In this document: in pieces, positions 14,513 to 28,339 of the stretch | How the letters are laid out: each line of letters opens with the position of its first letter | Position numbering within the stretch: the stretch's first letter is position 1 | Origin: Pelomyxa schiedti | Taxonomy: Eukaryota; Protista; Evosea | Reading direction: 5' to 3' | Length of the DNA: 64,000 bases | NCBI GenBank assembly: GCA_020536535.1 | Contig: JAHLWZ010000793.1 | Coordinates: 1-64,000 of the forward strand | Translations under genes and position numbers: made by a program | The notes under the pieces: generated by a model | What the model was told of the DNA's origin: nothing | Databases searched by the model: none | What the model saw: the letters and a program-made list of their open reading frames with translations, nothing else

Positions 14513-17500
14513 TTAGGGTACGTGGTACTGGCCTGGGGTGTCGAATATGAGCTCCTTGGTCTCGTGCGGCACAATGGCGAACCCGCGGAGCCATATGTCT
14601 TCGTGTGGAATGCGGCGGCGGAAGCGCGATTCCGATTCGGGTGATGCGGACAATTCTCGGGCCTGGTCCTCACTGTTTGTGAGTACTAGCTCCCAGCCTT
14701 GGTTTCTGACTTCCAGCCCATCAATAACCACGGTGGCACCCTCGCAAGCGTAGATAGCTAGGGCTCCGTCGAGGATGAGAGACTTGAGCTGTATGCCTTC
14801 GCCTTCAATAATGAGGGATGACCGGTCTGTGATACTAACTGTGGTTACCTGAGTGCAATTGTTAGCTAAGGGTATGCTGTGAGCTATTTAACCTTCTCTT
14901 TCATTTTAGTGAACGTCGGTGCCCAGTTGGTACTCAAAACGATGTTCGGCCATACATCTAGCTCCAAACCCCTGAACGGCAATTTTCTCAGCCCTGTAAT
15001 TTGTGCAGGGGGCGATGACACTAGAGTCCTCCCATCGGCTCCAATGAACTTGGCACCAACGTTCACAAGCGACAGGCAAGTAGCCTGGTATTGTGCCATT
15101 TCGCCGGATGCTGCCGAGGCAGGGGGAACACCTCGGGCAACGAGCTTGACTGCCTCCTCAGGAGAATTCTTTACGGGTGAGAATGCAAGCCACTGTTCCA
15201 TCACAGTGAAGCCAACCGGAGCGCCGTGAGGGAATGCCCGCGCAAAATCTTGCATTATACACTCCAACCTAACAGAGGAAATGAAGTCCGTGCGAGAAGA
15301 GCCCCGGTACTTCGGATTCACGAATTCTACAGTGTGTTGGCGGAAGAAGAATTAATTAGGGGCTACCTGGAACTTCACCCTTTGTGCTTTCCAGAACTTT
15401 GAGATATGGATCAAGTGCGTACACTAGCTGGTTGATGTTTCCAGGATACCAGGAATATCCCGTTGTTGGGTCAGCAAAATCGCCGTAACTGTTTCCTGCT
15501 GCCCGAAGGAGAGGCTCAAGTTGATTATACTCGACACATGCTGTCATACACGCGCCAGTAGCTTTGCACTCAAGTTCACAAATTGCCCCTATTGCCTCCT
15601 TTGCTTTGCGAGGGACACATACTGAGTTGCAATGGAAGTTGTGTACAGAAGATACTCCCAGTGCAGAGGGTACTGCATGGAAAAACAATCCATTTGTGTC
15701 CTGGTGAGATTCATGAGATGTGTATTAGAGAAGAGAAAGGGCTATAGACCTGGAAAAAAAATAGATACTGGAATCCTTGTTGAACAAACTTTTGTAACAA
15801 GCCAGATTGGTACAAGAGGGAGTGAACGTCTCCGTGACCATGTGGTTTAGTCTCGATCATGTATTGTCCATGCTCTGTATTATGGGGTTGTGCCAGGTGT
15901 GCAAAATTGTCAATTACACAGGCTACTCGCTCTTGCTTGAGGAGGAAAATCTTGTCCTGTCTCATGCCAAAGTAATTGTTTTGTTGAAGTAGCTGCACTG
16001 TTCGCGCATGAGTATCATCACTGGTCATGATTACAAGCGGTACATCACTTCCTTCAAACTCGGTACTGGGGAGAAGAGCGCGTGCTGCAGCATTGCTCGC
16101 TCTCTGCAGATGGAGAATTGATGTGATAAACTGTTTCAAGAAGCACGCGCCAGTTGTTGATTCACTTGTTAAAGCAAGTTTTATCCCAGCATATCCGAGC
16201 CTCTCTCCTAGTCCTCCTGCTACTAAAACAAATACACATTTCCTCACAACGGGGATGCCAGCTTCTTCATATCTAATGAACTCAGGATCGCCGTATTTGA
16301 GATTTTTCCCATTTGGTGGCACGTTAGCACTGTAGCCTTCCAATCTGTACAATGTCAGAAACAAGGTAAACGATATTTCCATACGGGTTTGCGCCAATTC
16401 GTGACTGTTCCAATAGTTTCTTTGCATTTGCAATATATTGCTTGAGGCCTTGGGGGTATCCAGTGTCCAAAAGTTTAATTTGCTCAAAGAATTTGTGCTT
16501 TTTATCGTCATTTGTGCCGGGAGGTTCCCAATTGGCAAATAGCTGTGCTTGATCTTCCTTAACGAGCCATTCACATCGGGCTATCTAATCACATTCTCAT
16601 CAAGGATCAAATCTTCTCAAACAAACCTCCTCTGGAGTAAGAATAGACCGGTTAACTTCAAGTGCTGCAGGCCAAGCAATCTCTGTTTTGTACTCAGTGC
16701 AAGTTGTAAATCACAGATGGCATACCATCTTTCCTTTTGAACATGCCCGAAAATGCGTGGCGCTTATCCTGATCCCTCATTTTCTTTGCTATCTCGGTAA
16801 ATTCAGTGTGTATAGCCTTGTCATTTGGGGCAAGCTCTTTAGCTTTGCTGAGAGCTTCATATGCTGCTGAAACCTCGCCAAGGGCAGATTTGGCCTGAGA
16901 GAGACGGAAATACGCCTTGAAAGAAATAAGAAGAGGGCATAGAAGGGCATAGGAAGATGTACTTTAGCATTGTTTGGATCTATAGCAAGAGCTGCCTTAC
17001 ACGATTCGACGACTTTCGGGTAGTGCTTGGATTTGAGTTGACAAGCAGCACAATTGAGTAATAAGGGAAGTTTGCACTCATTCATGTGTGACAGCTCATC
17101 TTCAGAGTAGTCACTCTCGTGAAGACCAGCGAAATATGAAAGGCCTTCAATGTTTTAGTAAAAGGATTGTAGATAGAAAAGTTGAGGTACCGATATTGTA
17201 TGCAGCTAGTGCCTTACGGAAAGCATTTTTGCGGAAATGTTCATTTCCCTGAGTGCGTGCTATGTTGGCTTGTGCAATCCGCTCCTCCAAAGTCTTTTTG
17301 CCTGTGATAATCGGAGCAATGTGTTTTTCCACACTGAGTACTTCAACCTCCCTGTCCTTGGCGTTACACGAGTTATAATAGGCACCACTCATACCAAATT
17401 AGGGAAGACTTGGGCGGAATTCGAGGTGGAGAACCGAGAGCCCCGAAGGCATACTCGTCAGTGCTCCACAACAGAAATTGCTCTCCACTGCGGACCCCAA

Positions 17501-18500
17501 TCATTCCTCCATCCCATGCCGCTATGAAATGTCACGAGGAAAAAAATCACAGGGAGACACGAACCTAAAACATCCCCGTTGCCAATACAGAAGGACAATT
17601 TAGGAGATCGATCTAGAACTCTGCCAGATTGTCCTATACGAGCTTCATAACGTACACATAGTCTGTCATTTGCAGCTACCTCAGTGCCACTAGGGTTTGC
17701 TGTTTTTAGAGTTAAGTAATCAATTTGGTAGGTTTTCCTAGATACCTTTTAGTATGTAACGCGAAACAGCCCCATCTTTGGTCATCGGGGTTCGCACAGA
17801 TATAGGGAACAAGGTAAGAAGGGCAGCATCATTCCTGAAAGAGCAAAATTTATTTTCACCCAAGACAGCTGTCGCGGAGAGATGTTGCATAGGTGTAGGC
17901 CTTGAAGGAGCCATCTCATTTATGTTGACCAACTTTTCTTCGCCATCATTGGTTTGAGAGTCCTGTGGGGGTTGTTCCTGGGCTACAGGTTCAGGCTCCG
18001 GCTCAGGGTGTGTAGCCGCAGTAGTGTTTGTAACTCTGGCATCCTTGTAAAGTAGTTAGCAAGTACAGCAATCACGCAACTTCAATCTCGCACCACGCGT
18101 CCAAAAGAAAGAGAGGAGAAAAATGCAAAAAAAAAAAAACCGGTCACACCTCAGGCAGTAAAGGGGTCACCAAACTCCAGGCTGCCCAAGTACAGTCCGC
18201 CGCCTGCATCTTCCTCGTGATTCTCTCGGGCAGGAAAAGTTCCTCCTCGTTCTCGCCGTTCGCCCCGCCGCCGCTGGCGTCCCCCCCGCCGCTCGCCGCG
18301 CCGCCGCACAACTCCCCCGTGTTGAGATCGTACCACGTCGGATCTGGGCCCTCCCATGCGCTGCCCTCGTTACATTCGGCAGTAGTTGTTGTTACGGCGG
18401 CGGTGGCAGTAGTGGTTGTCGGCGTTGTCGCAGTTGGAGCGGTGGCCGGCAGAGCCTTCGTGTTGTCGTCGGGTCCTTGTGCGCCGATCTCGCTCGTCAT
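14513..18500 (-). CDS. Fusion: FKBP-type PPIase + TPR repeats + UDP-sugar pyrophosphorylase (USP)
   Basis: FKBP motifs (MTKDGAVSRYILK...VLAAWDGGM...EYAFGALGSPPRIPPKSSLIWEVEVL) and TPRs (GNEHFRKNAFRKAL; LLLNCAACQLK...ALAIDPNNAKAYFR). A 43-nt intron at 16683-16725 then leads in frame into a full USP (VLVAGGLGERLGYAGIK, IMTSDDTH, KPHGHGDVH, VEYNQL, YPGNINQL, EFVNPKY, RLECIMQD, FSPVKN). Stop at 14513. Confidence 0.8.
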
Positions 18501-26709: not shown

Positions 26710-28339
26710 TCAAGTCTTTGTATTTGTATTCGTATTTGTATTCACATTATTTGTATCACTTGCACACTGGGTTTGTGACATGCTTTGGCTTTGTTTGGTT
26801 TGCATAGGGTTTGTTGTGCTTGGAGTACTGCGAATGCCATTTGTTGTATTGGTTGCCGCCATAAGGGCTCCTACTGTACGAGTAGCATAGGCCCGAAGCC
26901 TGGCTATTTCGCTCATTGTGGTTACCTTGAACTGTTCCAGCTTTTGGACAACTTCATCTCTCTGTTGGGTAATAGCTTCTATCATCTTTATGTAAGGTTA
27001 GATGACAGTCAGAGGGTGAGTTTGAATGGTACGAGTTGCTTCTCTTCAAGTTGCTCAGTGAGGTATTGGACACTCTTCTGAAGTGCGATTTTTTCATCGC
27101 TTTCCGCTTGGAGTGCTTCCCTGCACTGTGTGGGTTAAGTCATGTGCTTTTTGTGGGTTTGGTACCTCATTCAATTGTGCTTGAAGAGTTAACATGTCCG
27201 GTCCTTCTGTCTGTGTGCATTTAGATTTTCTGTTTGCGGCCAAATTTGGCGATATCTCCAAAGCTGTCTTAGGAAAGTCAGACAGTACTCAGTGTCTGTG
27301 TTGGATGACAAACCTTGGGCAAACTTATCCCTCTTTTTCGAAAGTAAACTCTGGGAGGGTGCTGCTTGAGTGTAAGGGGGAAATAAAAATATTCGAGGCA
27401 AAAATACCAGGGGGGGATATTTTATCTACGGCCCCAACATACGTAATGGCAGTAGTCCTGACTAGGGGAATTAAAAAAAAGGTTTACTCCCACACAAATA
27501 CCTTTTGGGGTCCGAGTGGTTGAGGGTCTAAATCCTTGTGGCAGCCAGTCACCTCCAGTGGAATGCTCCCCACGACTAGGAGTTTCATATTCCACATCTT
27601 CATTGCCACTCTCTGATGCATCCTCCCTACAGTTGTGTCCGCAAGAACAACCACTCTCCTCAGTTTCGTTTTCGGAATAAAATTCGTCATCGTAGTATTC
27701 TTCAGGGCCTAGGCCAGTTATAGCCTACAAATAGGTCGGAAAAGCCTACCAGTGGAATCCTAGTAGCATTAACTCAAAAAAAGTAATTTCAACGCCAGAC
27801 CTCTTCACATGCACAGATTGGTTCCTCAACCAGCTTGGGTTTCACTAGGTTTCTAGGTCAGGTTATGTGTATAAGGTGATAAGTAACCACCAGTTTATTT
27901 TGTGGCATGTGAATTGTAATATCTTAGTTGATGTATAATCGGATATATTTACATCCGCTATAACATAAAGTGTTGGAAATTTACATCTCCTGTTCCTTAG
28001 GTCCTCCCTTGCCGCGGCCAAGTTGGCTGAAACCCTCTGCTCCCTCCTCAGTCTCTGTTGTCATAGCTCAAATTACCAAGAGACAAAAGCATGAGGTAGA
28101 AAACCAGTTCCTCCGGGGTTGCCTTGTAAGCCTTGAGGTCGTGCACAGACGTCTGTTCATTGGTTATTGTTTTTTTTGGCAGACACAGATGAACACAGGG
28201 GGTATGAAAAATTGGAACGCACGTCCCAAGCGGGCCTCCTTCTTGGTACTGATCTGTTGGGTTGTTGTGCTGCTTGTGGGCGTCGCTGTTGACGGTTAAT
28301 TCCAGTGGGTACCCTTGTTTGGGGTCTCCCTCGTTGCAT
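26710..28339 (-). CDS. Coiled-coil protein with SPICE1-like N-terminal motif
   Basis: Splicing two GT-AG introns gives RRRPAWDTSVHDLKAYKATPEELRLRREQRVSANL, resembling the recalled SPICE1 N-terminus ([19 protein letters not shown]...). It is followed by an acidic region and heptad-rich helices. Confidence 0.5.

Follow-up and report, generated by a model that had tools for sequence, protein, structure and literature searches.

Several enzymes reach the chaperones Hsp90 and Hsp70 through a TPR domain carried on their own chain, among them PP5 (TPR and phosphatase), CHIP (TPR and U-box) and Cyp40 (cyclophilin and TPR). In PP5, the TPR domain is autoinhibitory and Hsp90 relieves the inhibition. 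The immunophilins FKBP51 and FKBP52 (FKBP5 and FKBP4) carry a three-repeat TPR domain behind two FKBP domains, FK1 and FK2. UDP-sugar pyrophosphorylase (USP, EC 2.7.7.64) is an enzyme of plants, green algae and trypanosomatids that accepts a broad range of sugar-1-phosphates, and to our knowledge nucleotide-sugar enzymes are not a class of chaperone-docked enzyme. Here we analysed a 64,000-nt stretch of DNA from the anaerobic amoeba Pelomyxa schiedti (positions 1 to 64,000 of contig JAHLWZ010000793.1, hereafter the window), in which a minus-strand gene at 18500..14513 joins an FKBP-TPR unit in frame to a USP. With a probability of roughly 70%, we read this as one real gene whose default spliced mRNA encodes a three-part FKBP-TPR-USP protein, an undescribed domain fusion that unites two known families, is seen in a single species and has its sequence already public.

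Rebuilt from the raw sequence, the gene consists of 13 exons and 12 GT-AG introns and gives a single frame of 1132 amino acids, from an ATG at 18500 to a TAA ending at 14513. Exons 1 to 7 lie at 18500-18150, 18043-17746, 17699-17565, 17521-17395, 17351-17191, 17144-16963 and 16915-16726, and exons 8 to 13 at 16682-16627, 16584-16385, 16344-15750, 15700-15367, 15326-14893 and 14848-14513. All introns but the first (18149-18044, 106 nt) measure 40-49 nt, which holds for 11 of the 12. In order, they are intron 2 (17745-17700, 46 nt), intron 3 (17564-17522, 43 nt), intron 4 (17394-17352, 43 nt), intron 5 (17190-17145, 46 nt), intron 6 (16962-16916, 47 nt), the junction intron 7 (16725-16683, 43 nt), intron 8 (16626-16585, 42 nt, phase 0), intron 9 (16384-16345, 40 nt), intron 10 (15749-15701, 49 nt), intron 11 (15366-15327, 40 nt) and intron 12 (14892-14849, 44 nt). 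For the intron after ILTPEE, an alternative acceptor (16626-16581) was rejected because it breaks the frame; only 16626-16585 keeps it, restoring ILTPEE-IARCEWLV.

The model was built independently of the annotation and is identical at every residue to GenBank KAH3757920.1 (P0266), the product of a gene annotated at 14513-18500 of the contig (181,238 nt; assembly GCA_020536535.1), in which window and record coordinates coincide. This protein was retrieved by a profile search with a scaffold USP and the USP exons of the window itself (alignment A3). It is deposited only as "UDP-sugar pyrophosphorylase [Pelomyxa schiedti]", a name from which the immunophilin half is absent. Its precomputed Pfam matches comprise FKBP_C, several TPR families and UDPGP, and it is the sole member of its own cluster.

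The two parts meet at the junction intron (16683..16725, minus strand), which has the form GTATGC...CAG and lies in phase 1. Its removal joins ...AFSGMFKRKD in frame to EIAWPAALEVNRSILTPEE, the codon of E482 being split between G and AG. In length and splice sites this intron is typical of the gene, and its GTATG donor is common to two other introns. The junction is seamless, with FKBP-TPR homology ending at M476-F477 and USP homology beginning at about 476-482, and no junction residue resembles a former untranslated region or spacer. A BLAST comparison with 437 fetched USP-family proteins placed the start of stand-alone USP homology at fusion residues 476-487, opposite homologue residues 1-30. 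In a local alignment of N-termini, the conserved USP pattern D-x3-(W)P-x2-L-x2-N-x3-L(S/T)-x-E begins at D481, one residue before the intron. M476-F477 is thus shared: the immunophilin motif ends there, and some USPs start at that position. The tryptic peptide predicted to span the junction is DEIAWPAALEVNR, preceded by K.

The USP part itself (aa 482-1132; 14513..16682, minus strand) occupies six exons including the stop codon. Pfam UDPGP matches aa 594-763 (E 3e-18). Searched against solved structures, aa 476-1132 match the USPs "MbUSP" 9uml/9umk at E 2e-141 and 3ogz/3oh0/8tg2 at about 3e-75, and the UAP and UGP chains at 4e-10 or weaker. The USP matches cover query positions 35-654 of 657, including the N-terminal helical and C-terminal beta-helix domains. 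An alignment of 57 full-length USPs contains 90 invariant columns, all kept by the fusion protein (by construction, as it is among the 57). These include the motifs G610-G617 (GGLGERLG, the NB loop, coded at 16217-16194), K733-D739 (KPHGHGD) and F878-Y883 (FVNPKY). An AlphaFold model computed with the 57-USP alignment gave per-residue confidence scores (pLDDT) above 90 for aa 482-1132. The USP half is thus complete and probably active.

This enzyme lacks an initiation codon. The first methionine inside the USP part, M673 (16028-16026), lies beyond the catalytic GGLGERLG loop at 610-617, and the stretch of the USP frame from the preceding stop to the exon contains no ATG. The only nearby in-frame methionines upstream are M464 and M476, both in the last TPR exon and using the same donor. 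Because no USP start precedes M673, USP can be produced only as the fusion or from M464 or M476 through the same splice. The immunophilin frame in turn has no stop and the USP no start, and transcripts of the upstream promoter therefore encode the 1132-aa protein whenever they are spliced normally. No other P. schiedti USP was found among the matches listed in the protein searches, and the organism's USP thus appears to depend on the fusion locus. With no immunophilin stop, no USP start and the family-defining residues kept in both halves, a genuine fusion is the most economical explanation.

An earlier note on this DNA had proposed the in-frame joining of FKBP-TPR and USP, with a 43-nt phase 1 intron at 16725-16683, an alignment reaching the N-terminus of USP, and no ATG for the USP part. 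The rebuilt frame and the identical annotation of the genome authors bear out the joining; the intron coordinates and phase are correct, as are the N-terminal alignment and the missing ATG. The note had also predicted a stop on retention of the junction intron, and this holds, with read-through giving KDGMPSVIYNLH and then the stop, an addition of GMPSVIYNLH. Its further suggestion, that the fusion is possibly switched by intron retention, fared less well. Whichever of the 12 introns is retained, a premature stop results, which in nine of them falls inside the intron itself; the stop is generic to the gene and lends no specific support to a switch. The junction intron also contains an upstream AG (...cactgAG). 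Splicing to this AG instead would change the reading frame, so that translation would terminate 12 codons past D481 (11 residues and a stop), a second conceivable and purely hypothetical route to an immunophilin-only product.

In the first half of the protein, a single FKBP-type peptidyl-prolyl isomerase domain spans aa 223-309 (17336..17682, minus strand, with two introns within; Pfam FKBP_C E 1.8e-12, above the gathering score). It matches FK1 of FKBP52 with 56.6 bits, is also aligned to FK1 of FKBP51, and pairs alternately with FK1 and FK2 of FKBP4/5. The tandem FK1 and FK2 arrangement of the FKBP51/52 subfamily is absent, Pfam giving one FKBP_C stretch only. Directly C-terminal to it lies a three-repeat TPR domain, aa 326-470 (16760..17287, minus strand; Pfam TPR families across 386-470, with TPR_1, TPR_2 and TPR_19 at 386-454), which aligns continuously to the TPR domains of FKBP4, FKBP5, FKBP8 and AtFKBP42. 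Among solved structures, aa 185-481 are best matched by human FKBP52/FKBP4 (8ffv_D, E 1e-41), followed by FKBP51, FKBP8 and Arabidopsis FKBP42.

The TPR domain retains R336, N340, N388, K418 and R422, which we take to be the positions of the two-carboxylate clamp (K, N, N, K, R) that binds EEVD tails. Of these, R336 and N340 belong to TPR1, N388, K418 and R422 stand opposite N324, K354 and R358 of FKBP4, and the first is conservatively changed from K to R. The unit closes with AFSGMF (aa 472-477) and then KRKD (16726..16756, minus strand), a segment that holds M476 (ATG 16744-16742), the closest potential start of a USP-only product. HMMER alignments to FKBP4 and FKBP5 extend to the end of the immunophilin segment and place AFSGMFKR opposite LYANMFER of FKBP52 and TYANMFKK of FKBP51, identifying the conserved YxxMF motif of the post-TPR helix with Y replaced by F. 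Docking to Hsp90 or Hsp70 through this clamp is plausible.

The state of both halves bears on whether the gene could be a decaying, non-functional relic, in which a recent deletion brought the two genes together and destroyed the function of either or both halves. That the fusion is seen in one species would fit such decay, as would the FKBP domain, which in the alignment departs from the FKBP12 active site at several positions; the equivalents of Y82 and F99, presumably active-site residues, are F and W. Against this, the 13 exons contain no frameshift or stop, the USP half keeps all 90 of the invariant columns, the TPR clamp positions and C-terminal motif are retained, and no second USP is listed for the species. 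We consider decay very unlikely and the least credible of the explanations weighed here.

The same architecture was sought elsewhere. A HMMER search with a 198-aa USP exon against 1.84 billion cluster representatives revealed no FKBP-TPR and USP fusion in the best 150 of 1742 matches, the fusion protein itself also not being among them. A length-restricted search for long USP proteins with region 523-1130 of P0002 found no FKBP or TPR domain in the best 120 of 551 matches, and a second, with alignment A3, found P0266 alone carrying FKBP and TPR domains in the best 120 of 4393 matches. Two long matches, P0001 and P0002, were rejected as immunophilin fusions since they are USP-USP tandems, and P0110, with an apparent alignment from aa 449, was rejected because its N-terminus consists of low-complexity sequence only. 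In a blastp comparison of the fusion with the 437 fetched proteins, none matched aa 1-470. A profile scan of metagenomes gave 80 USP loci, every match beginning at residue 407 or later, and tblastn of the FKBP-TPR half against their 565 kb detected no FKBP-TPR similarity in the flanks. Within the matches listed, the fusion therefore appears to be unique to P. schiedti.

The earlier note had stated that no such fusion was known and had called for a search for other proteins combining FKBP or TPR with UDPGP. Besides P0266, the protein searches showed none among the matches listed, and none lay near the 80 metagenomic loci. As to the first statement, literature searches, including Mastigamoeba with USP and USP with TPR, found no published description of an FKBP-TPR-USP fusion, and the sole FKBP and USP paper found concerns an engineered degron in Leishmania, not a natural fusion. 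The statement stands for the literature but not for the databases, since GenBank already holds the protein as KAH3757920.1, under the name of USP only.

Several points weigh against reading the locus as one gene for one fused protein. With a single species showing the fusion, conservation offers no argument, and scans of JGI metagenomes and GTDB genomes with P0266 found no close relatives. A search of aa 330-630 against 5.8 billion proteins, restricted to lengths of 165-525 aa, listed no junction-spanning or P. schiedti fragment, a blank that is not evidence of absence; the matches listed were only USP N-terminal fragments with at most 54% identity. In the AlphaFold model the FKBP-TPR half is of low confidence and uninformative, the alignment being without homologues for that half. 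M476 lies opposite residue 1 of several stand-alone USPs (MFTxxD..WP), and a USP-only product from an internal transcription start is therefore feasible. The remaining points concern the source of the data. The genome was assembled with SPAdes in single-cell mode from single-cell DNA amplified by multiple displacement, with scaffolding by RNA-seq pairs, and was annotated with Augustus followed by PASA and EVM refinement on Smart-seq2 transcriptomes (PMC8887013). It is thus a draft genome with automated annotation, and the use of transcriptomes is known for the annotation as a whole, not for the fusion model in particular. According to the same paper, genes contain 7.43 introns each and 98.4% of introns are GT-AG; neither it nor its supplements mention USP or FKBP (PMC8887013).

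Such an origin, together with the presence of the protein on one contig only, raises the prospect of an artefact, either a whole-genome-amplification chimera or an over-merged model joining two separate genes. The window contains no N runs, placing the junction inside continuously assembled sequence with no scaffold join. A chance join would need to supply a canonical 43-nt intron, stop-free frames and the exact boundaries of both families. An over-merged model would have had to pass over a stop or start belonging to one of the halves, and there is none; the model built independently of the annotation came out identical to it. An artefact is accordingly very unlikely.

A more substantial alternative is that the locus comprises two overlapping units. 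A 657-aa USP would be made mainly from M476 (or M464), by leaky scanning or from transcripts initiated within the last TPR exon, and the immunophilin would be made separately from intron-retaining or nearby-cleaved transcripts ending ...KDGMPSVIYNLH, leaving the 1132-aa protein minor or absent. A start at M476 would yield a normal USP N-terminus, and its codon has a purine at -3, as in annotated starts nearby. Same-strand coding sequences in the window are separated by 25, 102, 115, 251 and 728 nt; in so compact a genome (spacers down to 25-115 nt), promoters may sit inside upstream genes. On the other side, the spacing between the FKBP-TPR and USP parts is zero, unlike that of any of these neighbours, which speaks for one gene. 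No stop codon closes the immunophilin frame, and normally spliced transcripts from its promoter encode the fusion. An immunophilin-only product would require the junction intron, to all appearance fully canonical, to be retained, and the resulting stop is unspecific, as any of the 12 introns would give one. Residues M476 and F477 also form the conserved end of the FKBP51/52 motif and need not be an ancestral USP start. We regard two overlapping units as unlikely but far from negligible. Separately, a clade of stand-alone USPs from ENA metagenomes (P0159, P0173, P0174, P0181 and P0198) starts with MFTxxD-TExWP, which can be set residue for residue against the junction MFKRKD-EIAWP.

If the locus is one gene, as we favour, its protein would begin with about 190 disordered residues, followed by an FKBP51/52-like module (FKBP domain, TPR clamp and a capping helix with FxxMF), a linker of about 13 residues and the USP. 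In the AlphaFold model, the linker corresponds to a low-confidence coil at about 474-486, between a helix at 451-473 and the first helix of the USP, which begins at 487. The most likely origin of the fusion is loss of the immunophilin tail, the stop codon, the intergenic spacer and the 5' end of USP in a compact genome. By analogy with PP5, CHIP and Cyp40, the TPR clamp may dock the enzyme on the EEVD tails of Hsp90 or Hsp70, and such docking could localise, regulate or gate the synthesis of UDP-sugars. The full proposal, that the 1132-aa protein is the main product, is docked on Hsp90 or Hsp70 by its clamp, and has its USP activity or location controlled by chaperone binding, is a speculative one that we hold to be rather improbable. 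The data agree just as well with a neutral event in which neighbouring genes of a compact genome became fused.

The Pelomyxa USP shares about 50% identity with that of Mesostigma, 47-49% with those of Chlorokybus and land plants, and about 40% with those of stramenopiles (P0287, P0295, P0301-P0323). In a tree of the 57 sequences it falls inside the green-type clade at the end of a long branch, with 1.13 changes per column, within an unresolved three-way split. The presence of a streptophyte-like USP in Pelomyxa could reflect lateral transfer or poor sampling of Amoebozoa. "MbUSP" 9uml/9umk is by far the best solved match of the USP half, and literature searches for MbUSP found nothing; if it came from Mastigamoeba balamuthi, it would represent a stand-alone archamoebal USP of 600 aa.

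The start of the gene encodes a low-complexity region of about 190 residues rich in Thr, Ala, Gly and Pro (17825..18500, minus strand), made up of exon 1 and part of exon 2 with the 106-nt intron 1 between them. Pfam found no domain match in exons 1-2, and the AlphaFold model gave pLDDT below 50 for these residues. A GC-rich 33-nt repeat lies within the region at 18254-18318, and intron 1, which includes a stretch of 13 T, exceeds every other intron of the gene more than twofold in length. The annotated start codon and first exon are the least certain portion of the gene model.

The next neighbour is a zf-MIZ gene, which starts 115 nt past the stop of the fusion gene. Elsewhere in the window, the minus-strand genes at 26710-27195 and 27221-28339 lie 25 nt apart from coding sequence to coding sequence, and are either a very tight pair or one gene split by annotation. 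Scans of the window for tRNAs, Rfam families and tandem repeats gave nothing bearing on the fusion, and no common poly(A) or promoter motif was evident in the 3' and 5' flanks of the neighbouring genes.

If the fused protein is made, it would be the first case found of a nucleotide-sugar enzyme on an Hsp90-co-chaperone module, and would offer a direct handle on chaperone docking as a regulator of sugar activation. Should it also prove to be the main product and to dock as proposed, a metabolic enzyme class would be added to the TPR-recruited partners of Hsp90. The fusion might further hint at a functional link between the FKBP-TPR and USP families, and it provides an example of gene fusion by exact spacer loss in a very compact, intron-rich amoebozoan genome. 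Because the GenBank entry is named for USP only, surveys that go by name will miss the immunophilin half.

USP is prone to fusion in protists. USP-USP tandems occur in Cymbomonas (P0001) and in P0002, P0151 and P0152, and diatoms carry zf-CCCH joined to USP (P0200, P0203, P0221, P0232 and P0255). Other combinations are USP with an NAD-dependent epimerase (P0164), ROK with ribulose-phosphate epimerase and USP (P0119), and USP with PPDK_N (P0133). Some of these multi-domain proteins may stem from gene models that were merged or from read-through of tandem arrays. Their partners are mostly sugar-metabolism or RNA-binding domains, and none carries FKBP or TPR. Compared with the USPs of plants, green algae and trypanosomatids, the Pelomyxa USP is colinear over its whole length; unlike stand-alone USPs, it lacks its own start codon and is preceded by 481 immunophilin residues.

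On the immunophilin side, the likeness to FKBP51 and FKBP52 lies in the order of FKBP and three-repeat TPR domain, the conserved clamp and the YxxMF-type motif (AFSGMF), whereas the Pelomyxa protein has one FKBP domain in place of FK1 and FK2, and R in place of K as its first clamp residue. The single-FKBP relatives FKBP38/FKBP8, plant FKBP42/TWD1 and Plasmodium FKBP35 have a similar layout, but in sequence the Pelomyxa protein is nearer to FKBP51/52. Where FKBP-TPR immunophilins continue after the motif with a charged, calmodulin-binding or membrane-anchor tail, it carries a 651-aa enzyme, and it also differs from them by its 190-aa low-complexity N-terminus. With PP5, CHIP and Cyp40 it shares the combination, on one chain, of a catalytic domain with a TPR domain of the clamp type, a resemblance in how it may work. 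It differs from them in that the partner is a nucleotide-sugar enzyme, the TPR domain lying N-terminal to the enzyme and the FKBP domain ahead of the TPR domain.

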